From Penicillus capitatus (Eukaryota; Plantae; Chlorophyta), in assembly GCA_965649825.1 (NCBI GenBank), contig OZ287714.1, forward strand, positions 62,001 through 126,000: 64,000 bases of DNA. Direction: 5' to 3'. Position 1 is the stretch's first letter. Every line of letters starts with the position of its first letter. A program made the translations under genes and the position numbers. The notes beneath the pieces were generated by a model, which saw only the letters and a list, made by a program, of their open reading frames with translations, did no database searches and had not been told where the DNA came from. Positions 7,784 through 64,000 of this stretch are shown one piece after another.

Positions 7784-7817
7784 ACTGTCAAGCGTTTCCT
7801 ATCGTTTGTGACAGACC

Positions 7818-26986: not shown

Positions 26987-27967
<981 letters not shown>

Positions 27968-29319: not shown

Positions 29320-30106
29320 GCGAAACGATACTGTGCCGAATCACGACGTGACGTTCATAGCCAACGGACCGCCACATTCACCCCATGCTGCTCACAAATG
29401 GCCTTCATTAGCCACACCCGCCGCGTTCGTCGTCGAAAAGGCAAACCGCGATAGGAGCTTCCCCGAAGCGGACGGCCTTCATCCGACCGCGTGGCATTGG
29501 AGACGTCCACAGGACTGACCGCAGGTGACAGGAGACAGCAGCTGGGGGTGTTTGTAACAAAGCAGTGGTCTGGCGGTGAGCAGCATTCTGCCTGTTTGTG
29601 GGATGTCATGTCTGTTGTCTGTGCTCTGTCTGCCTTCCAATTGTTGCCAGTGAAGTTCAGTAGGTCAGCGGTTGTGAATTCGTTAAGCCTCTTGTGAAAG
29701 CAATGCAGAATTCACCGTCGCTTTCGCGTCGGTTCCGTCTTGTCCCATCTTTCCAGACATAAGAACCGCTGATGCATCGGTTGAGATATGGTCCCAGGAG
29801 GATAAAGTCCAGACCCCACACGCCAACAGCCATTTTGTTCTTGCCATCGCTTCGACCTTTGACACCACTGCAACGCAACGCAACAACGCACCTCAGACGG
29901 TAGAGTCCATGACTGGCAGCTCTTTGCATCGACTAATACCTCTCTGTCTTTCCAGACACCGAAACGCTTCGCATTTTCTACGCTTCGTTTCGCATACTTG
30001 ATTGACCTCTGCCTTTCCGTCCGTCTTCGGTAAGCCTCTGTCTCCGTTTTTGGAGTGAGACAATGAGATGTCGTTGCACTCGACGGTGTAGTGATTGCTG
30101 TGCGAG

Positions 30107-39769: not shown

Positions 39770-39892
39770 GAAGTGGGATTACAGCACAGATTGGTGCAGA
39801 GGCAGTTGAAGAGAGTCCTCGGCATGTGCTAAAACATCATCACCGTATAAAAACTCACTGTCCAGATTTTGCAACACTGGAAGGAAGAATGG
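39770..39892 (+). pseudogene. Diverged fragment homologous to the JmjC-like gene (35931-36054)
   Basis: Manual alignment gives 101/124 identical positions with one 1-nt gap; shared blocks CAGAGGCAGTTGAAGAGAG and CCAGATTTTGCAAC.CTGGAAGGAAGAATGG. Confidence 0.85.
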
Positions 39893-41060: not shown

Positions 41061-41367
41061 AGCCGCAAGCAGAATCCGGAAGGAAAGAGCTGACGTGACG
41101 CCGTGCCGTCGCATCATGTCGTACCCACACTGTGGTGTTTGTTACACGACCACTTGTTCAGCTCAATACAGCAATCGATCGAGGATCTGAAGAGTTTTCA
41201 TGGACTGGGCTAAACAAGAGAACTTGGTCCCGACGCCACTGGACGCAGGACTCTCCGTTCAAGGTTCCACGTTCATGTTTCAAGGTGTGCCCATTCGTAA
41301 AGCACTGCAAAAATGATATCGGTTTCAAAAAATGAGAATCAATCGTGTTTGTTTGTTCGTGTAAAGG

Positions 41368-44300
41368 CTAAAGAAAGTTGACGATGATGATATCCGAGCA
41401 CATGTCACCAATGATCTTTCCAAATTGATCTGTGACGACCTTAGATGTCGAAGAGGTGCCTTCAGGTGGCACCAGGTCCTTGGACTCCAGACAGTATTTC
41501 CCTTCATCATAGCATTCCCTGAATTTCTCAATCATCATGTCAGTGTCTTCCTTGATTCTACTGAAAAGCAAATGGATGTTCTTTTCGCGCAGTTTCTTCA
41601 TTGTTGTCTCCACAGTGAGTCCACTGGGATCGCCATTTGGAAATCTGCACGTGATAGTTGAAAAAGCAGGAATGTGTGTTGATGGTCACTCACGTATCGG
41701 TGATAGTACTTCTGTGCAGATCGGATCCATGTCCCGGAGCGTCGGCGATGAGAATGCAGAACTTCACCCTGCTGCTCCATCCTTCTAAATCTGCTGCAGC
41801 ATTTAGGCCTCCAAGGACGTCTTCGGCATCATCCTTTCCTCCATGAGCAATCTGATTTGAAAGAAATTCTTGCACGTGATTCGGTCCGTGCTCAAAAGGA
41901 CAACGACACATCTGTTCATCGCCGTCTCCGTAATCTCTGTAGGCAACCATGCCGAAATTAAAAACCAGTTCCACGAGAGAATGCTCCTCCTGGATCTTTT
42001 CAGAGATGGTACTGCAAATCACCTAGACATTGCCAACAGAGGACGTTCAAACAGACAGCCAAGATGTGAGCCTTACGTTGATTTGTTCAACGGCGGCTTT
42101 CATCCAAATGCCCATAGATCCAGTGCAATCCATGCAGAAGCAAATGTCCACTGACATCCTGGATGGTCTGTTGCCACGTATCAATCGTGCTTCTCTCTCT
42201 TCACGCATAGGTGCCAAGTCGGAGAACACTGCTTCTTGCTTCTCGAGAATGTCTCGGACGGATTCGTTCGTGCTTTCTGGGAGAAGGCGAAGGTTCAGCC
42301 AGACCATAGGTTCCCCAAGGCTCGTCGCATTCTGCTTATGGGCCGCCGTCCGCGTGGCATTCTCCATTCGTTCGATGGCATTCGGCAACAGATGAGGAAA
42401 GGCAGCTGTGATCCACTTGTTGTAGCAGTTCTTGACAAAGGAGACTTCGGGGCCAACGCTCATCGCCAGAACATCGATTCCTGACACTTCAAGTTTGGAC
42501 AAAGCTGAGGCGAGTCGCACACCAGAGCTTCCATAGCCGTCCGTCATGATAAAGATCTTCTTGGGTCCTCTTACGTTGCTGGATTCCAACAGCTCCTCGG
42601 AGAAGAGCAGTGCATCGGCATCCATGGTCGCAGGCTCATGTGCCTGCTCCACAGTCTTCATGAGCATGGCGATGCACACATCTTCCCACGCCATATCCGG
42701 CAGTTTAATCGGATAGATCTGTTCGGCGAACAGAACCACGGAAAAGTTGTCGATGTTCATCTGCTGGAGTGCCCCAATCATCAGGAAGAGTGTTTCCAGA
42801 GCACACGTTTGTTTGATTCCGTGCTTCATCGAGACAGAGATGTCCAGGAGGAGCGCGACGGCGTACTCTGCCCTTCCACCTCCCTTCTTGTTCGCGAAGA
42901 TCTTCTTCTCGCTTCCTTGTGTCGCCAGATGCTTGATGTATCCAGGAATGTGAATCGTCGGTCCCTTCACATCCGCTCTCTTTCGGTTGAAGACGTTGTG
43001 TGGAAGGTAGCTCTCCAAGGCTTCGGCCACGCGACCGATTTCGGATCCCAGACGCTCCTCGGTCTGCATCCAGGCTTTCTCGGCCGCCTTCAGATGCTCT
43101 CTCGCATTCGAATTGGTCAGCAGGGCGTCGTACTGCCTTTGGAGTTCGTCTGCCAGTTTCTCAACGTCGATCGGTTCGATCTCTTTCGTGACCCGTCGGC
43201 CCATCTCCTCTGCGAAGGGAATGACGCCTGGACGATAGTCACATTCGATGAAGTCTTCCCTGGTGAACCCCTCTGGCAGCACAGGCAACACGTTCTTGCC
43301 AAAATCTTCGCAGATGGCATCGAAGTCGACGTCTCTAAAATCGGTTTCGGGAGTGTTTTGGACGACTGGGACAGAACCCGTTGCAGATGCAGGCAGGGGC
43401 GAATTCGTGATGCTGTCGTAAATGATACCCATCTGCTGTTCGATCAGACTGACCAGAACTCTTGGCAGTGCATCGACTTCATCCACATGGAGCATGGCAA
43501 ACTGCGCACCGACGCTCGTCCACAGTGCTCTGATGGAACTCATCAAATCCTTTTGCAGGTCATCGTGGATGTTGAGGACCACCAAGCTGATGTTCTTCTC
43601 TCTGCACACGGACAGATAGTCCTCCCTCTTTCGTTCCTGAGTCAAGCCATCAACGATCATGAGCATCACTCTGTGATGCTGTCTCTTTTCTTCCTGGGAG
43701 AGACTCAATGGCCACACTTTCTGCGCCACATTTCTGACGGCTGATGCAGGGAATGTTCCTTCGTCGAAAGTGAAAGCATCGATGATCTGTTGTCCGACGT
43801 CGACAGTGAACGGATCTCTGATGAGCTTCTGCATTCGCTGAGAAGTGCTGTCGCCGAAGAGAGCCACGGCAAAGTGGAACTCCAATCTGTGGAGCATCTC
43901 CATCACCAGTACAAGAGCTTCTTTCATTTGGTGCTCTTTGGTGATCATGGATCCCGAATTGTCAACGAGCAGACACCACTCGATCACATGCCTTTCGGCG
44001 ACAGCTTTGTAAAGCTCTGTGTAACCCCTCTCCAATCCATGCATCATTGTCTTCAGGCACTTGGTGAAAGTGGCATTGTCCAGCAGCAGTTGATAGGTCC
44101 AGTTGTCGAGGCGCGCCGGTTCTGGATGGACTGGATCTTCCACCGGATGAAGGTTCGCAGCTGCGCTGTTTTCTTGGTCATGATGGTGGAGAGATGGCAT
44201 CTGAGACATCTGTTCCACTCGTTTACGGGCAGCTTCGCGGCTGGAATCGACCCCTACGCGAATCAATACAGCGTCGTCATCTGCGGCCCCGGTGAAGAGG

Positions 44301-47300
44301 TCGAAATCGTCTCCTTGGAGATTTTGAATCCTTTGGATTCTTTCGCCAGAGGAGGCGGTCTGTCCAAGCACACCTATAGTATTCCATGCCAGATGATCCG
44401 GGAGCTTAAATGCCCCTGTGGCTTTGACATCGTCCACTGCATCTTCCGTTGGCCCTGTTCCGGTTCCGGCTGTCAAGATTTTCGCATCCGAGTCGATCTT
44501 GATGTCCACGGTTCCCTCCAGCACCACAGAGACTTTGTCTTTTGTCTGAGATCCATCCATCGCGGCCGTCGATTTCAAGAAGTCATAGAAACTCGATTTG
44601 TCCTGGGCCGGATCTGGACCATCTTGCATGCCGATTTCAAAACGGGTAGCCTCAGGTCTTCGTGTTATTCGTGCGGAATCAGAAGTCGGCAATCCTCCGT
44701 GAGATATGCTTGAGCGATGGCCGCTTGTCGGAGGCATGTTGAAGTCAATGGTGTATCCATGGAATGCCTCTGTTGCTCCAGCATCCTCCATGAGACTTCT
44801 GAGTTCTGTCGGAAGCTTTTTCTTGTGAATCGCATTCAAGCAATGCACGACGCTGCGGTAGACGGGCTGCATAGCATCAGGCATCTGGAAAAGGCTGAAG
44901 TCTTCAAGGTACTGTCGCAGAAACTGGAAAAGGAAACCAATATCAATTCCTGCACACACAATTCGGCTCTCGACCATCATGTCTTCTTCCTGCCTCGAAT
45001 GGCGACAAAGGCGAACAGCCTTTTCGAAGAGAACGCACCATTGCTCAGTCGTTTCTTTCAGATGGACAATGGCATGTGTCATGTCACCGAACGTCATGAT
45101 CGTGAAATTGCCTTCATCGTGGAGACCCTCCAGAACGTCCTGAACCTTGAGACGTTTCGAGACATCTTTGAGAGCGGCCTCCACTGTCTCCAGGCTCTGG
45201 AAGGAGTTTGCAGGCACGGCCGTGGAAGACTCAGGCAGATCGTTTGATTCGATCTCGGTTGATCCATCTCTCTCGACAGAATCGTGTGAGGCACTTCTTG
45301 GCAAAAGGGCGATTTGATTGGTTGGGACATCAATGGACGGCAAGAACCACTTCCAGTCCGTATCGTCCGTCGATGCAACAGCACTGGTTTCTGCTGCTGC
45401 AGTGTCACCTCCACCATCCAGCGCCTCAGACACATCTTCTGCCGCGATATCACCCTCACCCTCATCATCTTCTCCCGCGTCGTCGCCCTCTCCTTCATCT
45501 TTGTCTTGGATGATTGCCACTGGATACGATGCATCTGGGACAACTGTCGTCTTAAATTCGAGCTTGACAGACCGCGTGACATGAAAAGCTTCCTTCTGCT
45601 TCCAGACGTCGTCGGCAAAGTATCGGTATAAGGAATGGAGAAGTGCCATCCTGCTGAAGATGCGGGCTTCAGAGGAGAGCTCATCCGGAATGACACATGC
45701 ATAGAAGCTGAAGAAGATCTCTTTCAAGACGTCACTCTTCTTTCTGCAGTCGCTCCATTTTTCGAGAGATGCAATCTGATCCACGAGCGACTTGATTTCG
45801 AGAAGGCCTGAAAGCATCATTCTCTTCTCTCCGTCTATCTTACTGACAGACTCTTTGGCTCTGGCAAGCTTCAGCAGAGACACGAGTGTATCAAACGCCT
45901 CTTTGTCGCAGGTCTCGTAGCTTGCTTCCTGGGTCTCGTCGTCGATCTCTGCGCCGCCATTGATGAAGGCATCAATGGCACCGAGGAGTAAATCGCTGTG
46001 TTCCTCTGGAAAGACGGCTTCTACGATTTCCCTCCTCAGGCTTTCGCTCTCTCGCTCTTCTTCCACAAGATCCAGAACAGCGGATAGAACATCCACGCCG
46101 GAGATCTCTTGAGCCAGTGCTCTGCAGAGAGACAGGACGCTGCTTAGTGTGAAGTCGGCTGCCACTTTTGTCAACCCGTTCACCACCTCAGGTTTCGCGA
46201 TCTCTGTCGTCTTCACGGCTGCAGCACACCGGAGAACTCTCGAGGCCAAGTCGAATGGATTGGTGCTGCTTGAGAGAGTCTCGGGCTTAAGAACCATAAG
46301 CGCCTGTCTCAGAGTTTCTTCCTTCTTGTCCAGAATCTCTTTCTGAATGTCAGAACTCTTGGTGGTCTCCAGACTGAACCATTCAACTAATAGGCTCCTA
46401 AGTGGAGCAATTAGCTTATGGCTTCCCTCACTGACGACATCGAGCTTCACAATCTCGGACATGCTGCGCTTCAGAGCCTCCTGACGATGTAGTTCCATGA
46501 ATCCATGCAATTCATCGGAGATTGCTGTGTCCATGTCGCGCGTGCTGCTGATGATCTTAAGTACACTCTCTTTGAGCGACGCCGGATTCTCTTTGGGAAT
46601 GTCAGTGTCATCCATCTGTCCAAAGAACAACTCGATTGCGATCTGTTGGATGTATCGTTTTCTGTGCTGCAATGTTCTGTAGTTCCCCGTGTGAAGCATC
46701 GACAGAGGATATACGAGCTCTTCGAGATTCCCTCTCTGTAGGATCTTCTGAGTGATGTTCTTCGAATCCATAGGGGTGCCCACCACACCGACAGGATTGT
46801 CAGAATCTCGTTCTCTGCCAAGAAGCACGCTCAGCAGATGATGGACAACGGCCTCCCCAGTCCCACCTCCTCTGATCTTGGCCAAGACGCAGAATGCATC
46901 GAAAACGCCTGCTGCGGTTCTGGAACACAAACCGTCTATCACGCCCTTCGTCTCTGCGTTCGCCAGATACTGTTTGAGGGCAACGAGGTCAATCTCCGCT
47001 GTACTCCATGTCTTCATCGTCATCAGATTCGTGATGACTGCTGGCGGGATCGTAGGGCACAGCTCAGTGAGGCTCTGGGCAATGCGCTGACCGAACGATT
47101 CGGAATCCTGGACTCCATCTCCGCACAGTAGCACGCCCTCCATCACTTCAGAGAACTCGATACGTTCATTCACGTCATGCACAAGTATGCACTTCACTCG
47201 TTCGAGGCAGTTCTTCATAGTCCGTTGTTCATTCTGGGATCTGCTTTCCCATATTTCTCTGCCACACTTCTCAAACAGACATGCCCTTGATTCATCCGTA

Positions 47301-50300
47301 AAGGTATCGCTGAGGCATGCGATGGCGGCCTTCCATTGCTGATCTTCGCGACAGTCTGCTCGCAGCACGTACAGAGCTACAGCCATCCTTCGCAGGCCAG
47401 GGGAGAGATCATCCAGAATGATGGAAGGCAGACAGATGTCTCCAAAGTGCAGCTGTCCGCCATCCCGAAAAGGCACGCAAGCACGCTCAAAATACTCTTT
47501 GAGGTTCTGAGACGTATTACGGATACCATCCGATTCCCGAAACAAATCTCCTGCATACTGAGCACATTCGCTGGGGATGTCTTCAGGATCGCTTTCGAGA
47601 ATATGTTCAGCTTGCTCATCGGACAACGGCCAGTCAGATTTCAGCATGAACATTTCGCTGAGCAGCAGAAAACAGAACGCTTGGACAGTGGATGCATGGT
47701 GCAGCTGAAGCGCAGAGAGAAGATGAAGATTTGACATGCGGTTTTCCCAATCACTCCTCGGAAAGCTGCTAATTTCACTGGATTCTGCACATAAGTTCAT
47801 CATCTGCCGAGCAGCGGAGGAAGCATGTCCAACATACGCCAGGAGAACCACATTGTGTGTCAGCGGCAGGCACAGTGACAGATCATCTTTGATCAAGAAG
47901 TCATCTTCGGATTGAATCTGCAACGTCTCTACGATCCATCCGGTTGACGCGCCAGTCTTCAGTTCAATCTGCGTGACCACACAGTTCCAATTGGGATGAA
48001 ACTCTTGTGGCATGTCATTTGAGCCGAATATCCAAGGTCCCTTTTTGCTGGAACCTGTTCCTCCCACGGCCATCTTCGACTTCAGCGACAAGGACTGAAT
48101 CTGGGGCGTCTCTACCAAATGGGTCTTGATCAGAGTAGGCTTCTTAGTGAATATGTCCAGTTTTCTCGTCTCTTTTTGGCTGACATTGAGAGGATTGAAG
48201 AAGAGACTGCGAGGATGGCAGATCACTGTGTTGAACTTGGGCATGACCAAACACACAGCGAATTTTATCTTCTTCTGATTTTCAGTGCAGAAGACAACGG
48301 TGGACTTCTTCACCTTCAGGGTCTGCACATCCCAGTGCATGACGATGTCTACTTTGCAGTACGGATCGAGCAGATAGCATTCCTGATCAAATGTGAAATG
48401 CTTGCTGCTAGGAGGATAGATCCTGACATGGACACCAGATTTGTTTTCGACCATGTTCGCTGCCTTGAGTGTGACGGATCTGCTTCCCTGTGCAATGGCA
48501 TCCAAATGCTCTTGCCGGACTTCGAAGTCGACTTCGCGTTTCAGGAAAGTCGGTATCGGTTCTATCCACTTTCCTGCGATCACCAGGCTCTTTTCGATGC
48601 ATCCGACGATTTGAATTCTGAGTTCCTGTCGCAGGTTGTCCAAAAAGCTGCTTGTCATTGAGAGTGAGATGTTGGAGGATGTCTCATCAACACGGACAGT
48701 GCCATCAACCTCGCCACCGATCTCCAGCACAGACGATTGCGGAATGAGATGGTAGATGACGGGAACTGTTCCTGTGTTCCGAATGCGAATGACAGCCTTC
48801 GTTCTCATTCCAGGCGGGACCACCGGCAAACGAAACATCGTCCCTTCAATCTTGCTTCCTGTATCGGTCACCAACTCGTACAGAGGTCGCGTAACTTGGG
48901 CTGTCATCGGAATGTATCTCATATTGCCGACGATGCCGAGGACCATCTTGCTGTCGACATCCTCATCCATGTCACCAGGATGCATCGTCACTGTCAGGGA
49001 CTGAGAACTGCGTGCATCCAGATGGAAGGACTGAGGAGAGAGAGTGAACTGAGTACGTGTGCGTCTGAACTGCACTTGACTCTTGACCAAGAGAGGAAAG
49101 TCTGTCACATTCTTGATGTGCAGTGTCTGTTCGATGTCCTGGGAATTGGTGATGACAGTGCCGAGATCGATGGCGTCTGTGCTGAGCTGCACGGCAAGTC
49201 TCTGGACTTCGATGATCATCTTGAATCTGGCATCCAGTCTTCCATCGGAAGATGTTATCTTCCACGATTCTGCGATCTGCCCAGTGACACCAGGATCTAT
49301 GCCGAATCTGAAGTGGCAACTGGTCTTTCCATACAGAGTAACATCTGTCGATGCTGTTCCATAAAAAGCCTGGGAAGATGGATCCACTGGCGAGAGATGG
49401 ACACGGATTTCTTCGCTCGTGCGATTCTCCACCTCGACCGTGTAGACATGCGTGCTCGGTGTCGACAGGGGAACGTCCTTCTGGTGTAGGACCGCGCCAA
49501 AGTCCACGGCGCAGTCTGGACTGCTCAAAGATAACATGCCGTCTTCCTCACAGATCGTAATCTTGGAGGAGTGTCGCATCTGTGTTCCGGGGAGAATGTT
49601 CATGGCTGTGGTTCCCAGCCTTTGGGTGATTTCCATTCTCTCGCCGAGTTGCTTTACTAGTCTTACGAAACATGTTCGGGATCTTCCCATGGACAGAGCC
49701 ATTTCCACATGCGACTCGCGATGCAGCATCATCTCTTGATCGAATGGAGAAAGGACCTTCTCGAGAAGGGTCTTCCATTCCTGCTGGTGCTTCTCACACA
49801 TCTTCAACTTCTCTTCAGATGCAGCACCAATTGCATGTTGACAGACTGCAATGACATAAAGCTCCAGCAAGATGCTCACGGCTTCGTTTCCGTATCGTCG
49901 CAGTGCATCGACGTCGTAGTTAAGCTTTTCTAGCATCGTCCGCATTTCGGCATTCCATATGAGCCCCATCTGTCCTGATTGGACATTGGCCAGTGAAGAC
50001 TCGTCGGTCGTCACCAGTATCATTCCCGGATGAGAAGACACGTCCGGAGGAGATTGGAGACTGCAAAACAGATTCTCGATTCCGTCGCGGATCGGATTCA
50101 GTCGCAGCGTTTGAGCTTCTGCGGCATTGAGACTGTCCAGGACCTCTTCTAGTAGTCGTGAAACATCTTCTGCGAATCGTTTGCCCTCCATCACAGCTTT
50201 TGCGTGCCACGAATGATCCATAGATGTGCGATCGCTCTGTTGGAGACCTTGTGCTCGATCTGCTTCTTCCAAGTGTCTCTGGGTTTCGTTTTCATTCGCG

Positions 50301-53300
50301 TGGCAGCCCTCAAATTGTCTGTACAGATCATCATATTCTTCATAATGATTCTGGAGTCGCTCGACGTAAGGTTGACTGGCTTCTGCTGCATGTGTATACA
50401 TCGACGTCTGTGGATCTTCAATTGCAGACGAGGCTGTCGCCATGTACATGTGATGCGTCGCAGCACGGAATTCAATGTGACATCCTCCAGGTGGACCAAC
50501 CAGAGCCGTCGTTCTATGAGACCGACAAAGCTGCTTCAAAGGAAATCGCCGTATCGAATGGATGCAGTGATCTACCGAAACTGTGATCACAAGGTTGAAG
50601 CGCGCTGGTACTGAAACGACAAACGGCATGCTGTCAGTGGAGCCAGGCTGGACGACCCAGTCAAGGTAGAAGGGGCCACCCTCCCCTCCTTCGCATGTCA
50701 CCTTCAGTTGACTTCCGTATGACTCAAACAACCGAACGTCGATGTTCCAGGAATCCACTTCGACGATCAGCGGGACAAGTTTCAGTCCTATCTTTTTCAG
50801 ACCTATTGGTTTTCGTGGTTTTCGAGCCGTGCTTTGTTGTCGGACAGATTCTTGCTTTTCCAAGATGTCCTGTAATCTTTTGCTCTGATCCAGATACACC
50901 GATCTCGGAGTGGCATACCACTTCGGCTGCATTTCTCTTCGATAGCATGCATCAACCTCGCGCCAGAACTCGGCATACAGTTTTGTCGTTTCTTTTGCTT
51001 TGAGGCGCAACTGCTGACCGAGACTTTGTTTCTGTTCCGTATTTCGGATCCACAAATTTCTCCATCTATTTGTCGCAGCGGATCTTATTTGTTCCTTGGC
51101 TTCGAGGAGCTTCGAAATTTGCATCCTGTATTGCTCATCGCAATCCTGACATGCCGACTGACGCAGCGATACCTCTTCAAAACACGCTCCGAGCTTTCCA
51201 ATCAGGGCACTGCTGGATTCGCGCATGTCTCCCGAGATCGCCCGGCAGAGTTGCATCAGGTAACTGCTCGTTGTTTCCAGGACGCGCTCAGCTGATTCAT
51301 CGAAGGTAAGATTCGCAGACAGGATACTTGGAACGTTTGTCTGCATGAGATCCTTGGAGACTCTCACCATCTTTTCGAGCACTTCGAGGGACACTGAAGA
51401 AGGAAGGGCGTGATACTCTCTCCATTTCTTCAGCATTTTCTGCCCTGCTCCAGACAGCAACTGGGACAAAAGGGTCGCCGCGGTCATCAGAACTTCGATC
51501 TCGTGATCTGAGAAATCCCTCATGACGGTGGCCATGTTCGCTTGCGATAGAGTGGCCTGGAGAGACGTCACATCCTGAAAATCGGCCAAGATGATGGCAG
51601 ACTTGAGATGATCATCCTTGTATCTTGCAGCAGCGAGGCGTTCAGACAGTGGTTTGAAGGATTGGTCGGCATTCGTTTTCTTCTGCAGAGATCTAGTGAT
51701 GCAGAGAACGCATTCCAAGAACCACTGTGTGCGCAGATTTCCCATGTACTGAATCAACAGGGGCTTTGGATTTCTACGTGTCTGGATCATCACACCTGAT
51801 AGTCTCTTGAATCCATTCTCCAGACTCGCGAAGGTTTCTTGGACCTGGGACACCTCTGCGTGTGCCAGACTCATATCCGACAGGTTGACGCCGACATCAA
51901 AAACTTCCCGGAAGCACTGAGATTCTTCGTTTGTCATGCCGCAATGTGATGGCCCATTTGACAGATCGTGCACCGCAAGGTGCATTTCCGCCATGCTCCG
52001 GAAGAATAGATGGGCATAGCAGGATGCACTCTGGTAGAGATCAGCATTCTCCGAGATGTGACTGTCCATCAAAAAGAGAAGCTGGAAAGGATTCGACAGA
52101 GAGCCGGTCTCCATTGCCGATCTGATTCCAGCGGCGCAGCTCTTCCAGAGCGAAGGCAAGCGATCCAGGTCCTTCTGAAAACTGCTGTTCTCGTGTGAAC
52201 GTAACGGAGGAAGTCTTCCGCTCTCTGCCGCTTTCCTGTACCAGGTCACTGGATTCTGTGCATCGACAAGGGCATTGTAGTGTCCCACAATTCTCAGCGC
52301 TGTGTTTTCGGTGTATTCCACGGCAGACCGCAACGCCCCATCCTGTCTAAGTCTGCCTCGGAGGATGCGGAGATCTTTTCGAACATTCAGGAGGTCTTCT
52401 GATGCTTTTGCGATGCTGTCTTCATCAAAGGAGCGATCCATGCACACGTCTCTGAGAGTGTCACATCCATCCAAGAAGCTTCTCTCCAGATCGGTGACGC
52501 GCAGCACATTCACAGACTCCTTCGCACAGTTGCGGGAGATGAGTTGCATGATGCGTCTGGATCCAAGAGAGGCGACAGTGCAAAGAGACTGCAGAGCGTT
52601 GCGGAAAGGATCTCCGATGTTCAGATCTGACAGCTGCTCGCGCTTGAATGCATCCAGTTCTCGACACAACTGTTCAAGCGCGATAATCCATTCTGAGTGA
52701 ATGCCATCACTATCCCTGAACATGACGAGACCGGAACGGGCGGCGTTCTCGATTAATAATGCATAAGCGTCCGCAATGTCGTCTTCTGCCTTCAAGTAAC
52801 TCTCAAAGTATTCTGTCTCGTATCCGAAGATACGACTGAGACAATGCAGTCCGTCCTGCAACAGATCCCGTAGGGAAGACGAGAGACGCTGACAGATTTT
52901 GGGCTGCAATCGACGAAGCCGATCTTCTGCGTCTATCATCTTTTCTCCGAGTTCATTTTTCTTGTTGGTCAACGTTTCGATCCTTTCTTCGACTTGTATT
53001 CCCTCTGCAGTGCGCATCCACCAGGCGGTGTCCATGAAGTCCGAGTCAGAAATAGGATGATAGATTCTTCGCTCCTTTACTTCCTCCAGCTCGTCACGTG
53101 CCTTTTTCAGCTCGTCTGTGGTATGCTTGCACACCATCCTCAGTTCCTTTGCAGTTCTCTGCTCCTCAACGGAATCCGAAAGTTGTAGAAGCGAAGACAG
53201 GAAGCTGAAATTCTGTCTGATCATCAGAACAGGCAACGCAATGAACTGCAGACTGATCAACGCCTCCTTCACAGATTCTGTATGCGCGTCACCAGATTCT

Positions 53301-56300
53301 GATGCAAGCTTCAGTCCCCAATCAGAATCGAGAAATGCCGCCACCGCGTTTCCGACCGTTTTTGTGATGCCACTGAAAACGTAGATGATATCACCGTTAT
53401 CCCTCTGGTAGCCGTAGGACACCAGTCGACCTCTTCGACGCATCTTCTGTACGGGATCGTCTCCTGCAGAAGCCGAACTCCTTTCGTCCGTCAGATCCAT
53501 CAGTGTGCGTTGCGTCATCTTGAAGTCTCCGCAGAAAAGAACAGCGATGTCTTCCACAGAAAGTCCGGCAGATAGGAAAGAAGATGCCACATTGGTCATC
53601 GTGGCAGATTCGTCCAGACATGTCGAGAGATCCATGCTGTGTGTTCGCAAGGCGTCGAAGACCTGATGAGCCATCAGCATCGAACAGGAGTTGTCTTCCG
53701 TGCACAGTGATGTGATCGAGGCCAATGCGTTTTGTATTTCTTGAGTCTTGTCAGGATGAAGCATCTTGTTCTGCTCTTCAAGAAGGAAGTCTGCCTTGGC
53801 GTTCATCAGTTCCACCGCGGCCTCCTGAATCAGGCCATCGCAGACCTCGGAGTCGAGTGCGCGGAATTTCATTCGAATGGACAGAGCACCAGGAAAGACT
53901 CCCAAATCCGACAGCTCTTCCAGGACATCCTTCTTCTTACTGAGGTCGTCGTCGTCAAAATCATAGCTTCGCAGGACCTCCATGCTCTTCCGCAGACGTG
54001 CATGGAATGCCGTGCTCTTGGCCATCCACATCAGAGTCTTCATGGAACTCTCTGCTCGATCCGTGAGGGAGGCAACGCGTCTAACAATCTCCACGTGTGG
54101 ATTCTCGACTGTATGGTCTGCAGGAGATGCCACTGAAGAAACGAGTGAGAAATCACAGCTCTGCAGACAGATGGATAGGTTTCGCGCGAAGGTCTCACAC
54201 TCTTTGGAGATGACAGGTGGATGTCGAGCATTCTTCTTCTTCGCCTGATCGAGTTCAGCTTTGAGGCTATTGTACCTACTCTGGTACTGGACCAGAAGCG
54301 CCTTACTGATGCGCACAGAACGCCTTGTCAATGCACTGAGCGCCGAAGCAGCCTCGTCCATCACGGCTCTGTCTGCGATTTCTCTTGCTTTGAGCCAGAG
54401 CTCTTCGTAACCGGATCTCAGATCGGATGCGGCGTTGCTGGATCTGTCATCATCTGACCCCTTCCTGGACGAAGGTCTGGACAACGAATCATTTGCATCC
54501 GCCGCGGCGTGCAAGCTCTCGGTCAGCGCCCTTTCTCGGACTTCAGATTGCAAGAGGCGGACGTACTGATCCTTGAGTCGCAGGAAGATCTCGTAGAGAT
54601 TGTTGGCCTCCAAAGCTGTTCTGGATATACCCAATTCATCGACAAGATCCTTCAAGTTATCATCCCAGTCGTCGAACTCCTGTGCCGACTTCTTCCTATC
54701 GAGCTTGATCTTGTCTCTGTCCGCGATCAGAAATCCATTGAAATAGGCAATCGATCCAAGAACAAACGCAGTCACCGCATTGCACTTGGTCCACAGACCT
54801 GGGTCAGATGTATCCAGATGTACCAGAGAATACTCGATCAAGAACTCTCGTAGGCGCAGTACTGGACGGATATAATCCAGCGCGAAGAATAGATCTCCAT
54901 GCGCTGCTCGAATGTCACGTTCGAGCTCAGATGCTTTCGACACCAGATCTTCACTCGGGAACTTCTTCAATGCCTCAAAGTGCTCAAGAAAGCTGTAGGC
55001 GATGGAGGCCGATTCTCGTCGGTCAGGCTGTGTTGCCTCTGTCTTGATTTTCGCCATGCTTTTCCTGACTTCGGCTTCGACCCATGCCACGAACTGCTTG
55101 CTGAAAAGATCTTCAACAGACGAGATGTCAGACTCGTTCTCGATGTTCCCGTACTGCTGTCGGTAAAGAACAGAGTCGAGCTTCAGCACGCCGTGGTACA
55201 GCAAAGGTGCCCGGGAGAAATCCTGCCTCCTGCTGGGTACCTTCACCTTCCTGATCAGATCCTTCCACGTACGGACAGCTTCGGAAGGCGCTGTACTGTG
55301 AGGAGTCGGATGATTCTGGCCATAAGACTGCAGTGCGTCGAGGAAAACGAGCAGACCGCTGCCCAATCGCGACAACGGTCCCTCAATCGTCGCTGTTCCG
55401 GGCAGCCGCTGCACATCGGAGAGGTCCATCTTGTATTCCGTATGCATCTCGGTCCATTTCCTGAGCCACGTCAACTGCGAAAGATCGGACGGCCCACAGC
55501 AGTAGGGTCTGACGTTTACGGATGTCTCCCTGCCAGCGTCTGAAGGTGTCTTCTCAAAAACAACAAGCGACGCTAATGCTGCAATTCTCTGCTCAGCAGC
55601 CAGCTCTGCACAAAGAATGACAGCAGAGACGGTGCTTTCCCTGCCGTCAAACGGATCGAGTGCGAGATTCTCTTCTGTGCACAACACGATCCGACACGGA
55701 ATGGGATTCTGCCACTCCGAGAAGCAAACCCCGAGCCATATCAGGGCAAGCTCATTGGCGCACATATCCTGTGGTTGGTCCTTCATTCTCGAACCGAGCA
55801 GAGAGGGGAAAACCGCATCGAGATTCAAATTCTTTCTTCCAGTCTCTCTGCCGGCGGACAGATCGTTCAAGATCTTTGCGTGGAACTCCACAGTGGCTGT
55901 CCATTCGTCCGCGAACAGGAACACGGCATCTTGTGACTGAACAATAGCATCGAGCCGTTCAATGTAAGGAGCCATGTCGGGCATGGTCACGCCATCGACC
56001 TCCTCGTCAGGAGGGAAGTCTTCGGTTTCAGATCCGTCGGAAGAATATTGAAAACTCCGACCACCAAAGGGCCAGATGGTCTTTCCAACATCCACAGCAT
56101 ATTTCCAGTATCCTTGTCCTCTCTTGGCCGATTTGTAAACCTCCATGGCTTCGTGAACGAGATGCCGCAGCTCCTCGATCTTCTTCGCCTGGCACAGGAG
56201 CTTCTGCAGGTCCAAGATGTGTCCACCACTTCCGGGGACTCTCTGAACCGTCAACAGACGTTCGTCCACCATCAATGTCGTCTTCCATCTGAGCGACGTC

Positions 56301-59300
56301 ATGGCTATCTGCAATGCCATTCTTCTGCGTTCTTCTGCCAAGCGTTGATTACTCTTCAGAAGATTGACAATGACATGTCTGAGTTTCATGTCCGATGTCG
56401 ACACCCTTTCCGACAGCAGCTTCTCCAAGTTGTAGTTCACTGCCTTGTCAGAACAAACGCCTTGCGCTTGGAGCAATTCTCTGTAGCACGTCGCGAAGGA
56501 GACATCTTCGAGCGGGACAAAATAGACGGAGAGGTTTCCTATGGGGCGCCAGTGCCGCACGACATCGACGATCTTCTTGCCATCCGAAGACAACTCGGAC
56601 TGCGCCGAAAGGACTTCCAGCAGATCCTCGAGTTCCTTCAGCACATCTGCAATGTCCTCGATCATGAAGCGCCTGTCTTCCCAGTCAGTGTACGAGGAGT
56701 TGGCGACGAGCTGCTCGCACAAAGACACCAGCTTCTGAGGATGATCACAGACGAAATCCAGCCGTTGCCTCTCGTTGAGATGGACGGCCTTGAAGAACTC
56801 TGTCAGCGGAGGACATCCTGTGCTGTCGCAGACGCGTTGGAGTGTATCCTTGGTCCTGGCCCCTCTGGGAACTTCCTCCGCGAGTTTGCGAATCGTCGAC
56901 TCCTCCTGCGGATACAGCTTCACCGCCACTCGATTCATGAACTGGAGGACGAGTCGTTCGAATGCGTCCATGTCCTGGATCTTCATGATGTGTCCGAACA
57001 GGATCTTAAGGGAAACGTGGACGACGGATGCAAAGATGAGGCGGATGTTTTTGCTCTCGGCGACAAACGGCTTGACGGCGTCTCTGCTCTGTCGAATGGC
57101 ATAGAACTTAGACGGTGGCACTTCTGCTGCCGCCTCGCAAGCGCTTCGAATGACTTCCTTCAGCTTCACCCAGTCTCCTTCGTCCTCCAAGAGAGATGCA
57201 TAGACTCGCCATGCTCCCCACACAACAGCATTGAAAACAGGCTGATCGTTTCTGAGGAGAGAGATGACGAGGGAGGATGCTTCAAGCAGTGTGCGCAAAC
57301 TGATGCCAGAGTCCTTTGCAATGGTAACCTGGCAGTTCCTGGCAAGCTCTTTGACTCTCGCGTGGACAAAGCAGAGGAGCTGAGCAGACATGTTGCCTCC
57401 GGCGTGGGAAGCGAACCTCTCTGACAGAATCTCCACGACTTCGTGCTTCTCTAGGGATTCGAATGTTGCTTCGGAGACCCCTGCATCGATCTCGGGTAGC
57501 CAGATCTTGATCATTCTGTTCAGAAGGGGGTTGGACAGCTTGTGTGTGTTGATCCTGTTGAGGTCCGCCGTCGCAAAGAGCCGAGTATCTGGATGGATGC
57601 CGCATTGCCTCGACAGCCTTTTCCCCTCTGCATGCTCGTAGAGATTCAAGAAGGGCTCCTCTTCGAAGAGCGACAGCACTCTCTCGATCACTTCGGGAGG
57701 TGCGGCGTTGATGTTGTCGAACAGAATGAACGTTCCAGACTTGAGAGCCTTCACGAGATCGGAGGTCACAAACTGAAAGACGACTGTCCTGTCTGCATCA
57801 TCCATCGACGGCGGTAGCTTGTCTGACAGGACATGCAGTTCTTCGGCAAAGGAGACCGTCGATCCTCCATCGATGCTCTCCAGGAAATCGACGGCATCCT
57901 TCAGTCCTTGAACCAGTTCGTGGCCGATCCCCAAGTCAAACCGATGGAATCGCTTGTCGCTGGACGCTTCTTGGGACGGATCGCTGCCGCACCGCGCCTT
58001 CTTGATCGCTCGGTAAAACTCCGTCTGCTTGTCCTTGGGAATGCGTTCGCAGAGAGCAAGTCCGGTTCTTATGATTCTGTCGCGAAGGTGCAGAAGTGCT
58101 TGGAGGACTTGGCCGTGAATAGAGTCTGTCCTTGCCGGCAACCACTGGCCGACCAGATCGGAGACATCACAGTCTCTGTGCAACGAGAGCACTAGTAACG
58201 GTCTGCCTGTCAAGGCCGCCAGCTCCTTCACCAGGCACGTCTTCCTGGAGCACGTCGGTCCCTGCAGCAGGACGGTCCTGGTGGACTGGCTGGCCGCCGC
58301 CAGCAATTCGAGCTGCGCGACCGTCTCTTTGGTGTGCACCAGAAGTCCGGAGGATGCGCGATCGGGATTCTTGTCTAAGTAAACGCTTCCGATGCGGACC
58401 AGATTGCTCACGGATGTGTCAATGGAAGTGCTGTTCGCTTCATCGACCAGGAGTTTTGGCGGTTCAACCGCATCGTCGATGGCTCTCTGGATGCGTTCCT
58501 GCGCAGCCTGGTTCTCGAATCGATGCTTGAAGACGAGCTGCAATGCGTTGCGAAGCACGGCATCCACCACGGCGGCTCTCTCTTCGTCCGAAAGGTCTTT
58601 TCTCGAATCATCTGTCGCCACGATCTTGTAGTGAGACACCTGATCGCCGACGTTGCCAGCCACGATGTCTCTGACGGCCACGAGGTCGCGCAGATTGAAT
58701 CTCTGCTTTCTGCTGGCACCTCTGATTTCTCCCGTCTCGACCAGCAGGTGTACGCTCGTGAAAACGTCAAAGAGCTGCTGGATGCTGTTCTCACTGACGA
58801 CGACCTTTTGACCGATGCGGTCGCTGAAAAGCTTCTTCAGAATCTCAAACAGTTCGTCATTGCTCTGGGGATCGAGCTCGACGGTCGTAAAGAGATTCCG
58901 GATGGATCTGGAGAGCTTCGTTCTGCCTCCCCCCTCGGCAGCAGGGTTCATCGTGGCGAAGATGTGGACATCCTTCACCGTTAGATTCTTTGCCCCCGAC
59001 TGACCGGGAATCGCCAATCCGTGCTCGACAGCCGATCCGTTGAGCAACGGAACGAGCGATTCCAACACCTGAGGCGACAGCAGGTTGATCTCGTCCAGCA
59101 GTATCCATCTGCCTTGCTTGATTGCCTCGACGAGCTTGCCATCCATCCAATCGAATGTCCGCCGATTGTCCTTGTACTGCGGCACGTCAGATCCGAACAA
59201 CTGCTCTGCGGTCGTGTCGCTCGAACAGTTGATGCGTTCCACTCCTGTCCCCAGACGCCCGGCCACTTCGACCACGACTGCTGTCTTCCCGATCCCTGGC

Positions 59301-62300
59301 GGCCCTTCGAGCAGCAGAGGTGTCTTGGTGCAGACGGAGGCGAAGATGCGAGCGGTGTTGTCCACGACTGTGGGAGTTCTATGCAGCGAAGGTCGCCATG
59401 CGTTGTCCCCTTCTGTCTGAGGGGGAATGCTCAGTGCGAGACCCACACCATCCAATCGAGCCAATCGATCGCCTCTACCTATTCGATCTTCGATCGTGAT
59501 GCCAAAAGAGGAGGCGCTGTTCCCTTCCGTGGCCTTGACTTCGTCCAGTGCGTTGTCCAAGGCGCGAACTTCATCGCCGAAATGATTCAACAGGATGTTC
59601 TTTTGCTGTTCTGGCGTCAGGCCGAGGAGATAGAAGTATCTGGCTCCCAGCAGGATGATTCTCTCGAAAGTCATGGTCTCCCTCGGATGGTGTATGACAA
59701 AGTTGGCCCATCTGAGAGTTCTTCGGAAATCGGCGCATGGATTCTCGTGCGTTTCTTCCACAGATGCAGACTGGATGGCTCGGATGGCATCCATCAGTTG
59801 AGAAGCTTCATTCGGATAATCATCTTTCATCTCGCAGAAGAGCTTCGCATCGACAATCGACATGATATCCTCACTGGAGTACGCCGGGATGTGGATTCGC
59901 GTGATCCTGCTCTTGGTGGCCTCCGAGAGTCGCGGTTTCTTGGCAGCGGACTCCAAATATGCCGTTGCTACGAACGCGTAACCCGTCTCTGGAATATCCA
60001 GCGTCGCAGCACCGATTCCGCTGAGCGATGTGTCCTCAGGAATGGAGAATGTCGGATCCAGCTCGAGTGCACTGTTCAGTCGTTCTGTCACAGACTGTGG
60101 ACATCGATCGTAGTCTTCGAGGACGCATATGTGCTTCAGGGTGATGGCATTGACAAACGGACCATCACGGAAGACAAAGCATCCATGGCTCTTAGCCCGA
60201 CTGGCATCCGACATAAACGCACACAACTGGTTCATTCGATGGACTGCTCGTTCCAGGGCAGCTGGTGGGTGCTGATCGAAGACCTCGTTGAGCAAATCAA
60301 CGATCTCCCTGACCGTTTCGAGGACTGAGTTAAATGCTCTGTATTCGGGCTCTTCGGCGCGTTCCCTTGCTTCGCTGATCTCGACTTCTGCTTCTGCATC
60401 TGGATGCCGGTCGCCAGAGAAACCGCAAGCAACATCCATCGATTCCTGTTCCCTCTGAGCGGGGCCTCCGTCTTCGTCAGATCCTCCCCATTCCGTACCG
60501 CTGCTTGAACCATCACCGGATCCCTGGTCCTCGGCGGCCGGCGAATCCTCCTTGTTCTCATCCGTGTCAGAGGGTGCAGACTGTGTATCGCTGACAGAGT
60601 CGGCCGAGCGCCGATCATCTGGGTTCTTTGGTCTTCTCTTGAAGAGTTCGTTGAGCACACTGATTCTTCTGGGAAGATCGCTCGCGCAGTCAGTCCGTCG
60701 AATGCTGCGTTGTCGGTTTTCGGACTTGTCACTCACGATGAGCTCTGCCTCGATCTCTCGGAGAATGAAGTTGCCGATGGACAGCAACATCTCAAGGACT
60801 TCCACTGTGGATGCTAGACGCACTTGGCCGATCAGCTCCGTCGCTTCGGAATCGGACGTCAAGTGTACCATCTGTGCCCTGTCCATCATCTCAGAGATCT
60901 CCAGCCACGTCCTGATCAGTTCTGTCTTGAACGAAGTCTCTCCGTACAGGAGCACTGGTTCCCTCGCCTTCATCGTGAATGCCAACTCGACGAGCTTATC
61001 TTGAAAAATCTTGGGAGGGAACTTCGCAGCACTGCCGTGTTTCCACAGACGGCTTCGATCCAGTCGATATCCACCGAAGGAAACACGGAGAGGTCCCTGG
61101 AAAAACGAGAGCCCGTGACTCGTCTCCTGGATGTGCTTCTCCTTGCAGGATCTTGCAATTATCTCTGCTTCTTCGCCGAATGCCTGTCTGATGAGCGACA
61201 GGAGCTGCTGTCCTTCGTCCTCTGTGGAGACCAGTGGATTGAGCAGTGACATGGCGACAGCGGCCCAAGATGTTGTTCCTCCTGCGTTCTCTGCTCGGAG
61301 AAGCTTGAAACGGCGAACCACCTTGATCAGGTCTCTCATGGTTAGACGGAAGATCCCGGTGGACGCAAAGTACAGACTGGACAGACGCTCTGCGTCTGCC
61401 ATGCTCACGATGTCCCTGTACTCTTCCCTCTGGAATCTCCTGTAGATGATGTCGGCGAATTCTTCTTGCGGAAAGTCGCCCACACCCACCTCCAGGAAAC
61501 GGTTCCGCACCGTAATTGGCAGGAGTTTTCTTCCGTCTCCACCTCCGTGGAATGGATTTTGCGTGGCGAAGAATCTGAATTCTGGATGGACGTTGATCGT
61601 CATGCCGGTGCCCGGAATCTGAACCACCCGCGAGCCCTCCAGGAACGGCATCAGTGCTGCGGCTACGGAGAGGGGTGCGAGATTGAACTCATCTGCCACG
61701 AACCAGTCTCCGTTCTCCATGGCTTGAACGAGGACGCCTTTGGAGTAATGAAATCCGGCCTTGTCGGGCAGCCATGTCCCGAAGTAGTCCTGCAGCGTGG
61801 TGGTGTCGCTGTTGCTCAGAACAGTGACAGGGTTGCTGCGTCCACGGAACATCCTCAGTCCTCTGATCAGAGCAGTCTTTCCCACTGCCGGCTTTCCTTC
61901 GAGGAGAATGGGTTTGTTCGTGCAGACGCCGAGCAGAACGGCATCGGCGTATGCTTCTCTCGATCGAGTCAGCACCAGTTCCGGATCCACCTCGACGCTC
62001 TCACGCAGTTGCAGTCTGCTCAGAACGTCCGAACGGCAGCCCATGTGATCCAGCAGGTCACTGCTTTGCTGTCGGTCCTTGGCGCGGAAGACAAATGCTG
62101 CCATCAGTGCACAATGCAGGCAGTCCCTTGCATCTGTCTGCGGATACCGGACCATCAGGTTTGTCGCGATGTCCAGGAATGTGACGAAATGTCTGAAGCT
62201 GCACCTTCCTCCCTGCCTGTGCAGAAAGCTTCGGATTCTCAGACAGTAATCGCAGATGCCTTCGGCATGCTGTCGACAATGCTCGTCGCACAGGGAGCAT

Positions 62301-64000
62301 CGCAGCATGGAGTGCAGGACGGAGCAGAACTTGCTGTCTGGCAGCCGTGCGGGATCGTCCACATGCACTGTGAGGAATCGGTTGGCCAGGGCGGCAGTCA
62401 GTTCGTTCGACGAGCTGTCGTATCCTCTCGAAGCAACGCCCTTCGGAGTGTGCGTTGCGATGAACTGGAATCCTGCCGCAGGCCCCGGCACCTTGGACAC
62501 CGTCCCATCTGCCAGGACGCGGCAACGCAGATTCTTCGTCTCCCCCTTCTCCGACAGGCAGAGGATCTTCGGCGACTCCAGTACGGGGTTGACGCGCTCC
62601 TGCAGCACTGCCTCTGCTTGACCGATGTTGTCCACGATGCAGGCGCTGCCATCTTTGAAGGACCTTGTCAGCGGACCGTCCCTCCACTCTATGGCGATGT
62701 CTTCACGGCTGTTCTCTTTGGGCAGGTGTTCTCCGAGCATGACGGAGGGTTCGCTCTCCGCGGTGAGCGTGACTTGCTCGTAGCGGTTTCTCAGGAGGAA
62801 GGCGATCGTCTTCGCCAAACAGGTCTTGCCCGATCCAGCACATCCCTCGATCAGAATGGGCTGCTCGCTCCGCAGCGCATTGACCAGCGCCGTCAGCAAC
62901 GCACATGTCTGATCATTGAGCGCCACGGGCATCTCCGGCACGACAGAGCCGCGGAAAGGCACGGAGGCTCGATCGACGTTCCACTTCGCCGCAAAGATGT
63001 CCAGGATGACCGTCCGGGCTTCGTCCGTCCTGAAAGCGGAGCAGTAGATCTCGGCGCCAAGTCGGCCTAACTCTTCCGGGCTGTCGCTTCTGAAGCACCC
63101 TGTCTGCAGGGCATCCGCTATCCACTGCGCCAACCAGAACTCGGAGAACGAACTGTACACCCCGTGACGTCGCATGAAGTCTGGATCGAGCACGGCTCGC
63201 GAGACATCTCCGTGGATGGACATGCATCGCTCGACCGTCTTGACGCTGTCGTCCGGCAATGCCTTTCCAGGGAAGTGTCTTTTCCAAAAGGCCCCCGCTT
63301 CGAATCCGCATCCCTGTCTGCCTTCCGATGTCAGAGCGCCGTATGCCTGCACCATTCTTTCGAAACTGGAAAGGGGTGTGCCCGACGGGGCGTTCTGCTG
63401 GCTGGCGGACAGGCCACTCTCGCTCAGGACGTCTCGAACCAGCTGCTGGCCGTCCTCCCTGAACCGGCTGCCGTAGATCAGCCATGCATAGTCGCCGAGC
63501 TCTTCGTCCGTCTTGGGCAGCTGTTCGGCGGTTGATATCATTGCTGTCCACATCAACAGCTCCCGGTTCGTGACGACGGTGTGGCTTCCCGTCTCGCAGC
63601 ACCTGCTCTGGATGGCTTCTCTGACGTCGCAATGGAAACCGGTCATCTTTCCTGCCACGGCGCGAATGAGATCCGTCTCTGCGCCTTCGAAGTGGCGATA
63701 CAGTGTCGACTGTACGATGTGATCCCACTCTTGCTTCGGCAGCTCCTTGAAGTGCACGACGGAGAACTGAGAGAAGAAGGCGTGGCTCATTCGCTCTCTC
63801 TTTCCAGCCTGCCACGGATTCTGGGTGGCAAACAGCCTGAAGTTTGGATGCTTCTTCAGAATGCGAGGAGGCGTCAGTGCAGAGCTCTGGTCGCAAAGCA
63901 CGATCTCGCCACTCTCCAATGCATCGACGACCACCTTGAGGGCGCTCTCCTCCGCCAGGTTCATCTCATCGAGCAGGACCCAGTCGCCTTTCTCGAAGCT
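41368..64000 (-). CDS. Giant midasin-related protein: 6 AAA+ modules, long linker, Ig-like repeats, 3 vWA domains; at least 7,509 aa, 5' end outside window
   Basis: Open frame 64000-42077 (7,308 codons), introns 42023-42076 and 41645-41693, stop TAG at 41368-41370. Walker A motifs GCAGSGKT, GKPAVGKT, GETSFKT, GPPGIGKT, GPTCSRKT plus a Walker B (WVLLDEMN) at the window edge; MIDAS motifs DNSGS, DISVS, DCTGS. Confidence 0.92.

Follow-up and report, generated by a model that had tools for sequence, protein, structure and literature searches.

The stretch of DNA analysed here (64,000 nucleotides of the Penicillus capitatus assembly GCA_965649825.1, contig OZ287714.1, positions 62,001 to 126,000; below, the window) carries on its minus strand, from 64000 down to 41368, a giant gene whose product joins a midasin-like ring of AAA modules, a very long linker, an array of ASH-type Ig-like domains and three vWA domains in one chain. 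Judged by sequence, the ring, the stem of the linker and the MIDAS domain are midasin-derived and stand in the canonical order. The family of the protein is a new architecture, unnamed in the databases searched, and is probably a paralogous one of the midasin type. With modest confidence we regard the protein as a single-chain six-module AAA+ mechanoenzyme of the midasin lineage, which would serve not as the ribosome-biogenesis MDN1, an ATP-driven machine that removes assembly factors from immature ribosomes, but as a remodeller of a non-ribosomal substrate. Single-chain AAA+ rings are rare; the well-known ones, dynein, midasin and RNF213, have each opened a field of mechanochemistry. The product is organized as follows, from the N-terminal side of the window to the stop codon (residues are numbered from the first one within the window):

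63431-64000, minus strand: AAA1, C-terminal half with midasin-type lid (AAA_5 profile positions 65-139, AAA_lid_7)
62375-62857, minus strand: AAA2 (AAA_5, 55.7 bits)
61517-61909, minus strand: AAA3 (AAA_5, 51 bits; hidden Markov model (HMM) of canonical midasins, 116 bits at the AAA3 position)
59906-60973, minus strand: AAA4 (AAA_5 profile positions 53-138 at residues 1275-1365)
58889-59320, minus strand: AAA5 (AAA_5, 78.5 bits, and AAA_lid_7; the best-scoring module)
57512-58366, minus strand: AAA6 (AAA_7 and AAA_5 matches)
56585-57505, minus strand: proximal linker (stem), residues ~2166-2472, alignable with the canonical midasin linker
49586-56584, minus strand: family-specific linker, ~2,330 residues, of helix-favouring composition
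47831-49573, minus strand: tandem ASH/MSP-type Ig-like beta-sandwich array, ~5-6 domains, residues ~4810-5390 (Pfam, AlphaFold, Foldseek)
44081-47830, minus strand: spacer, ~1,250 residues, with no recognisable domain (no Pfam match)
43406-43993, minus strand: vWA1, MIDAS motif DNSGSM ... GT ... VDG, residue 6680 (Pfam VWA, 33.4 bits, above the cut-off)
42326-43180, minus strand: vWA2 with an N-terminal extension of ~100 residues, DISVSM ... TDG, residue 7053; midasin-type MIDAS domain
41371-42148, minus strand: vWA3, DCTGSM ... GGKDDAED ... ADAPGHG, residue 7291; coded by three exons (spliced domain Pfam VWA_4, 25.6 bits)
41368-41370, minus strand: TAG stop codon of the giant gene (splice junctions and reading frames taken from the DNA itself)

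The gene is confirmed to be real and very large. A frame free of stop codons runs on the minus strand from 64000 to a TGA at 42047-42049 (7,317 codons), and this TGA sits within an intron of 54 nucleotides (42023-42076). Exon 1 ends at 42077 after ...VEQIN and is followed by the donor GTAAGG with its GT at 42076-42075; exon 2 (42022-41694) is separated from exon 3 (41644-41371) by a second intron of 49 nucleotides (41693-41645, GTGAGT ... GTGCAG). The spliced product within the window has 7,308 + 201 = 7,509 residues, exactly the figure that the original prediction, made by a model from the sequence alone, had given as a lower bound. The 5' end of the gene is cut by the window edge at 64000. 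The first residue in the window aligns with residue 892 of P0001, an orthologue of 78% identity, and with residues 879 and 881 of two further relatives, so that about 890 N-terminal residues would lie beyond the window and the full protein would have about 8,400 residues. A protein of this size is also obtained for a more distant relative rebuilt from adjacent reading frames. In the relatives, AAA1 is preceded by an N-terminal domain of ~830 residues, which lies outside the window and has no Pfam or PDB match.

The stop-free frame of 22 kb has a ratio of nonsynonymous to synonymous substitution rates (omega) of 0.2-0.36 against the orthologue, and chance is therefore impossible; the same ratio, together with intact frames in more than eight relatives, excludes a chance reading frame or a pseudogene. 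A membrane protein is unlikely, since no hydrophobic segment is found in the 7,509-residue product. The spliceosomal introns agree with the eukaryotic nature predicted for the gene and, taken with the neighbouring genes, place it in a eukaryotic nuclear locus; an origin from a giant virus is unlikely given these introns, the host-type neighbours and the lack of viral matches.

Within the first 2,170 residues, the Pfam profile AAA_5 reaches 275 bits over seven stretches and is accompanied by the midasin AAA lid. Six tandem modules had been proposed between 57500 and 64000. All six are there and collinear, but AAA1 is cut, and the window holds five complete modules and the C-terminal half of AAA1. 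The Walker A motif of AAA1 lies beyond 64000 and is known from orthologues alone (GASGVGKT at residue 835 of P0001); its Walker B (WVLLDEMN) is found at residues 7-14 and its lid at residues 112-186. Both motifs are intact in AAA3 (GKPAVGKT and VADEFN) and in AAA5 (GPPGIGKT and ILLDEIN, with the midasin lid at residues 1735-1843). In AAA2 the Walker A GCAGSGKT is intact and the Walker B, IVDN, is devoid of the catalytic Glu, a feature kept across the family. AAA4 has a degenerate Walker A (GETSFKT) and a Walker-B-like VLEDYD, and AAA6 has the P-loop GPTCSRKT and the Walker B LFDN. Both Walker motifs are thus complete in AAA1, AAA3 and AAA5, AAA2 retains a P-loop only, and AAA4 and AAA6 are degenerate. 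This pattern over the six modules is conserved across the family.

The P-loop and the Walker-B-like motif of AAA4 are separated by an insert of ~150 residues (residues ~1085-1235; 60290-60750, minus strand), which is of low complexity, acidic, rich in Ser, Gly, Asp and Glu and poorly conserved: this region is 30% identical to that of P0004, against 50-60% for the remaining ring. A short acidic patch had been noted in the spacer, and a D/E/G patch of ~35 residues is indeed present there, coded by a two-copy tandem repeat of 33 nucleotides at 45433-45499 (Tandem Repeats Finder); the acidic maximum of the entire protein, however, is the AAA4 insert. In P0002, P0128 and P0129 the downstream frame starts at a common place just past the AAA5 P-loop (window residue ~1575), which suggests an intron or frame break of conserved position that is lacking in the window gene.

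Among solved structures the best match of the ring is Mdn1/Rea1 (E-value 4e-115 over seven stretches, PDB), with NorQ (1e-10), CbbQ (2e-7) and dynein (4e-4) far behind. Alignment of profiles by hhalign is in register (window residues 2-2172 against midasin 339-2264, E-value 3e-100). The HMM mentioned above, built from 23 canonical midasins, gives one match of 289 bits in which profile positions 1467-2562 correspond to window residues 1261-2472, i.e. from AAA4 to ~300 residues past AAA6. The protein shares with midasin six AAA_5 modules in one chain, collinear from AAA1 to AAA6, the midasin AAA lid, D-N instead of D-E in the Walker B of AAA6, a homologous linker stem of ~300 residues and a MIDAS-type vWA domain which bears the same N-terminal extension and lies close to the C-terminus. 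In both proteins a long tail lies between two conserved ends, the ring and the MIDAS domain. The collinear ring, the closest structural match and the retained stem and MIDAS domain all bear out the midasin derivation that had been predicted.

The departures from midasin begin with size, ~8,400 residues against ~4,700-5,600, and with the N-terminal domain, ~830 residues in the family against ~300. In the canonical midasins scanned (one each from a yeast, a plant and a mucoromycete) GxxxxGK[ST] occurs in six of six modules, whereas AAA4 and AAA6 of the window protein depart from it. The canonical Walker B is E-D in AAA1 and D-E in AAA2, AAA3 and AAA5, that of AAA4 being missed by the motif scan; in the window protein the Walker B of AAA1 is intact, but that of AAA2 and the P-loop of AAA4 are degenerate. 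The large acidic insert within AAA4 is a further difference. The structured linker of midasin has ~1,800 residues, and the window protein aligns with it by sequence over the first ~300 residues after AAA6; the ASH Ig array and the 1,250-residue spacer are insertions relative to midasin. The unstructured region rich in Asp and Glu, which occupies ~500 residues before the midasin MIDAS, is absent, as no 100-residue segment of the tail reaches 27% D+E. Finally, the midasin MIDAS is a single, C-terminal vWA domain, whereas here it is flanked by vWA1 and vWA3 (three extra vWA domains in relatives).

The three vWA domains that had been predicted are all recognised by their DxSxS-type motifs at the residues listed above. 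The most conserved segment outside the ring is vWA2, with 61-67% identity to distant relatives; its DxSxS, T and D residues of the MIDAS are present and are invariant in the relatives. Together with its extension it matches in the PDB solely the MIDAS domains of Mdn1/Rea1 (E-values 8e-5 and 4.5e-4), and in the reverse search of canonical midasins with the family HMM it scores 31-36 bits at three MIDAS domains, with vWA1 scoring less. The motif residues of vWA1 are invariant in six of seven relatives, and the domain is ~47% identical to relatives whose overall identity is 30%. No PDB sequence match was found for vWA1 or for spliced vWA3. The exons of vWA3 also follow the gene in relatives. In subtype-B relatives (see below) and in more distant ones, vWA3 is followed by a fourth vWA domain (loci L002 25087-25647, L004 24966-25379 and L005 18082-18642). 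In the window the stop at 41368 lies only ~250 nucleotides from the next gene, that of SepSecS, and so there is no room for such a domain.

The linker after the ring comprises ~2,630 residues in total. The helical appearance attributed to it holds as far as amino-acid composition, which is helix-favouring, but no structure prediction stands behind it. HMM and hhalign comparisons reveal no significant similarity of the family-specific part to the midasin linker or to Pfam or PDB entries. A phmmer search of 1.84 billion representative proteins with residues 2473-3672 returned 11 matches, with no canonical midasin among them; hhalign with whole-length or whole-tail alignments gave two-column artefact matches and no usable linker alignment.

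The Ig-like repeats, expected at 47830-49530, are supported by three approaches. Pfam recognises one such domain at residues 4938-5021 (ASH, HYDIN_VesB_CFA65-like_Ig, PapD_N and Cep192_D3). The AlphaFold (AF2) model of residues ~4810-5390 is all-beta and consists of 5-6 beta-sandwiches, with a predicted local distance difference test score (pLDDT) of 80-90 over the central ~320 residues. The top 24 Foldseek matches of this model are all chains from structures of the ciliary central apparatus of Chlamydomonas and mouse (E-values down to 3e-25), which we take to be ASH-array proteins; titin, TRAPPII and CEP192 SPD-2 come after them. The identity in these matches is 9-14%.

Relatives fall into two subtypes, A (the window protein, P0001, P0002 and P0139) and B (P0003, P0004, P0005 and P0141), which are ~36-43% identical to each other. 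Two independent assemblies each contain both subtypes, with similar coverage and GC content: ERZ26696514 (180x for A, 139x and 202x for B) and ERZ25074695 (42x for A, 30x for B). It is likely that the subtypes represent two paralogues per genome. Relatives that are only ~30% identical still have the entire architecture in collinear order, with one or two copies per genome; at this distance the ring retains 50-65% identity and the linker 17-30%, and conservation is highest in the ring and in the vWA1-vWA2 module. In the comparison with the 78% orthologue (dS 0.42-0.48), omega is 0.22 in the ring, 0.25 in the stem, 0.36 in the linker, 0.32 in the ASH array, 0.32 in the spacer and 0.22 in vWA1. 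All regions analysed are thus under purifying selection (omega 0.22-0.36). Between haplotig pairs omega is 0.20-0.35 for subtype A and 0.46 for a short subtype-B copy.

This short form of subtype B, found in ERZ26696514, has 4,809-4,813 residues in one open frame (L002 10001-24430, L005 3001-17442). It is without ~3,360 residues corresponding to P0004 3092-6451, namely the distal linker, the ASH array and the spacer, and its ring with ~950 residues of linker joins vWA1-vWA2 directly. It also has N for D in the MIDAS motif of vWA1 and K for E in the Walker B of AAA3. A sister group, P0006-P0010 (JGI entries named 'MoxR-like ATPase' and Logan contigs), comprises proteins of 4,400-6,000 residues with six AAA_5 modules and the midasin lid, encoded by uninterrupted frames on contigs of 19-41 kb within which no vWA domain was detected; P0009 and P0010 carry ASH domains as well.

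Word-based searches of 5.8 billion proteins, with length filters outside which VWA8 falls, yielded no named relative, all matches being ENA, JGI and Logan sequences, and no relatives of the vWA module were found in viral contigs or JGI metagenome contigs. In the literature searched no paper was found on a midasin paralogue, on a midasin-ASH architecture or on a midasin-like protein with vWA or ASH domains. The family therefore appears, as predicted, to be undescribed: no named or published relative came to light.

The gene could instead be simply the MDN1 of its lineage. According to this alternative, which we consider unlikely, a highly divergent MDN1 extracts UBL (ubiquitin-like) factors (Ytm1/WDR12, Rsa4/NLE1) from pre-60S particles, and the insertions are lineage decoration. 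The midasin-like ring, stem and MIDAS domain in canonical order speak for it, as does the fact that canonical midasins can expand: P0120 of Closterium has 7,202 residues and is full-length on the midasin HMM. Nor was a canonical MDN1 of the same organism encountered, although no search aimed at it was made. However, on a sub-profile of AAA4-AAA6 and the stem the family scores 280-375 bits, far under the canonical midasins with a full-length match, all of which exceed 1,000; P0120 reaches 587 bits by a partial match. A maximum-likelihood tree (IQ-TREE, 881 columns, built without an outgroup and without a canonical MDN1 of the same algal lineage) separates the fungal, plant and charophyte midasins from a group formed by the family and its JGI/Logan sister group, by a branch of ~4.7 substitutions per site with 100% support in the Shimodaira-Hasegawa-like approximate likelihood ratio test (SH-aLRT). 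The original prediction had named, as the result that would speak against it, that the protein is the only midasin of the genome and groups with orthologous MDN1s; in the tree the family lies outside the clade uniting fungi and plants. Since the two deep subtypes co-occur, no more than one of them could be orthologous to MDN1 and at least one is not. The Asp/Glu-rich region is missing, the AAA4 Walker A and the AAA2 Walker B kept in canonical midasins are lost, and one subtype-B copy dispenses with 3,360 residues of the tail while its frame is still open. The long supported branch, the other Walker pattern, the lack of the acidic region and the two subtypes are in line with the predicted distinction from the housekeeping MDN1. 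The unnamed canonical midasins among the search matches lie on contigs of ~17-30 kb from other sources.

The MIDAS domain of Mdn1 docks onto the ring and binds, through its metal site, a UBL domain with catch-bond behaviour, while ring and linker pull (PMC8837202). The conserved ring, the conserved MIDAS end and the invariant MIDAS residues of the present family lead us to propose a similar mechanism of pulling by the MIDAS. By analogy, the MIDAS domain would dock back onto the ring and grip an acidic ligand residue via its metal ion, and ATP-driven movement of ring and linker would extract the ligand from a large assembly. ATP may be hydrolysed in AAA1, AAA3 and AAA5, and AAA2 may bind nucleotide in a regulatory role. 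The tail, roughly doubled in length, would give a longer reach; the ASH Ig array could serve for docking or as a scaffold, and vWA1 and vWA3 could bind additional ligands or act as anchors. With these additions the machine would be retargeted to a non-ribosomal substrate. Most plausibly, although the indication is weak, this is a cytoskeletal, centrosomal/flagellar or membrane-trafficking assembly, because ASH arrays occur in those contexts.

Several points weigh against a non-ribosomal remodeller. The family could be orthologous to MDN1 and highly divergent, and long-branch effects could yield the tree obtained. The middle ~4,000 residues of linker and spacer are, by sequence comparison, without an informative homologue, and the N-terminus lies outside the window. 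The AF2 model of the vWA1-vWA2 module is poor (pLDDT 48), and its best Foldseek match, human MDN1-MIDAS, lends weak support to the assignment. The homologies, the motifs and the constraint are observed; that the MIDAS domain docks, that the ring hydrolyses ATP and generates force, and what it acts on are inferences.

More tentatively still, algae might possess a third, undescribed family of single-chain rings with six AAA modules beside dynein and midasin, separated from midasin long ago and duplicated to give two subtypes, which would add an ASH array and two to three extra metal-site vWA domains to a midasin-type ring with its MIDAS grip and would act on a giant non-ribosomal assembly, possibly a flagellar or centrosomal one. 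If true, the family would be a natural experiment on the retargeting of this type of motor, with ring, stem and MIDAS grip kept but with re-wired ATP sites, a doubled tail, an ASH insert and multiplied metal-site domains, and MIDAS-mediated pulling would not be confined to ribosome assembly. The short subtype-B form offers a built-in comparison for the function of the long tail. Since family members are usually split into several open reading frames, genome annotations probably miss or fragment them.

The protein could instead be a structural or mechanical part of the flagellar axoneme (central apparatus) or of the centrosome, anchored by the ASH array and with the ring as a chaperone of assembly or maintenance. 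This we hold to be improbable. It would fit the top 24 Foldseek matches of the Ig array, all central-apparatus chains, the match to CEP192 SPD-2, the HYDIN/CFAP65-Ig and Cep192_D3 matches in Pfam and the ASH-bearing P0009 and P0010 of the sister group. Yet TRAPP, OCRL and VAP/MSP-type proteins have ASH domains too, and TRAPPII stands in the same Foldseek list; at 9-14% identity the matches mirror fold and tandem arrangement rather than orthology, and one subtype-B copy has no ASH array. The tandem ASH/MSP-type Ig-like array is what the protein has in common with Hydin, the CFAP47/65/74 class and CEP192/SPD-2, and this resemblance is confined to one module of a protein of ~8,400 residues. We know of no AAA ring or vWA domain in these proteins.

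VWA8 (KIAA0564) is an animal mitochondrial AAA-vWA protein of the MoxR/dynein-midasin clade (PMC10743472, PMC7159879). Its chain likewise carries several AAA_5-type modules and, at the C-terminus, a vWA domain, but by its published description it has ~1,900 residues and one vWA, and lacks both an ASH array and a long linker. MoxR-class rings generally act with vWA partners (PMC7159879, PMC13036017). With the bacterial members (NorQ/NorD, CbbQ/CbbO, RavA/ViaA, GvpN) the window protein shares the type of AAA module (95 bits for GvpN) and, by analogy, the coupling of a ring to a MIDAS-bearing vWA; they form homo-hexamers of ~270-330-residue subunits with the vWA on a separate protein, whereas the window protein unites six diverged modules and its vWA domains in one eukaryotic chain. 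Dynein has an N-terminal linker and, between AAA4 and AAA5, a coiled-coil stalk with a microtubule-binding domain; neither feature is found in the window protein, where ~195 residues separate AAA4 (end ~1365) from AAA5 (start 1561) and the dynein match in the PDB covers one module.

A role in innate immunity or conflict, in which the protein would sense or remodel invader structures in the manner of RNF213 or, as their equivalent in eukaryotes, of the prokaryotic MoxR-vWA ternary systems, had been put forward in the original prediction and is very unlikely: MoxR-vWA pairs do serve prokaryotic conflict systems (PMC7159879), AAA5 matches bpMoxR with 22-32 bits (sub-threshold to borderline) and multiple vWA domains could be sensors, but PADLOC matches are limited to the generic P-loop (no more than 24 bits, none in the tail) and include nothing specific, Pfam finds no effector, RING/E3 (ubiquitin ligase) or death-like domain, outside the ring it is the vWA modules that are best conserved, not most variable, no region has an omega above 0.36, and the family is neither expanded nor hypervariable, with one or two copies per genome and a collinear architecture even at 30% identity, while the neighbour genes are of housekeeping type and viral contigs hold no relatives. 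The prokaryotic ternary systems consist of separate genes for MoxR, vWA and a third component in an operon, with effectors, unlike this single intron-bearing eukaryotic chain. RNF213 combines a dynein-like AAA ring with an E3 module (RING / RZ finger), whereas the window protein has no RING or E3 family in Pfam and no RNF213 chain among its PDB sequence matches at E<=0.001.

The genes adjoining the giant gene are of a generic eukaryotic, housekeeping type. The rest of the window contains:

373-1143, plus strand: WD40 exon fragment
3466-5301, plus strand: gene for a GRAM and VASt (lipid-transfer) protein, split over two adjacent frames
7812-9422, plus strand: long frame without a Pfam match
13253-16566, minus strand: protein-kinase gene
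17523-18230, minus strand: NAD(P)-binding exon fragment
21034-21954, plus strand: RNase P/MRP p29 exon fragment
26990-27244, minus strand: 4Fe-4S ferredoxin-type exon
28870-29340, minus strand: U-box exon fragment
32501-33025, minus strand: sugar transporter exon fragment
34441-35220, plus strand: long frame without a Pfam match
35109-36542, plus strand: long frame without a Pfam match
39829-41117, minus strand: gene for SepSecS (O-phosphoseryl-tRNA(Sec) selenium transferase), directly downstream of the giant gene

The catalytic domain of the protein kinase is divided between the frames 15964-16566 and 15288-16010, and a frame of 712 codons without a Pfam match comes next. The SepSecS gene is rich in introns, several of them short and some in frame, and its presence means that the organism has selenocysteine machinery. 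In the loci of relatives, CGL160_C (a family of plastid ATP-synthase assembly factors; L001 3914-4357) and DUF760 (plant/algal; L007 19165-19725) were recognised. With SepSecS next door to the window gene, these two families hint at plastid-bearing, selenocysteine-using algae.

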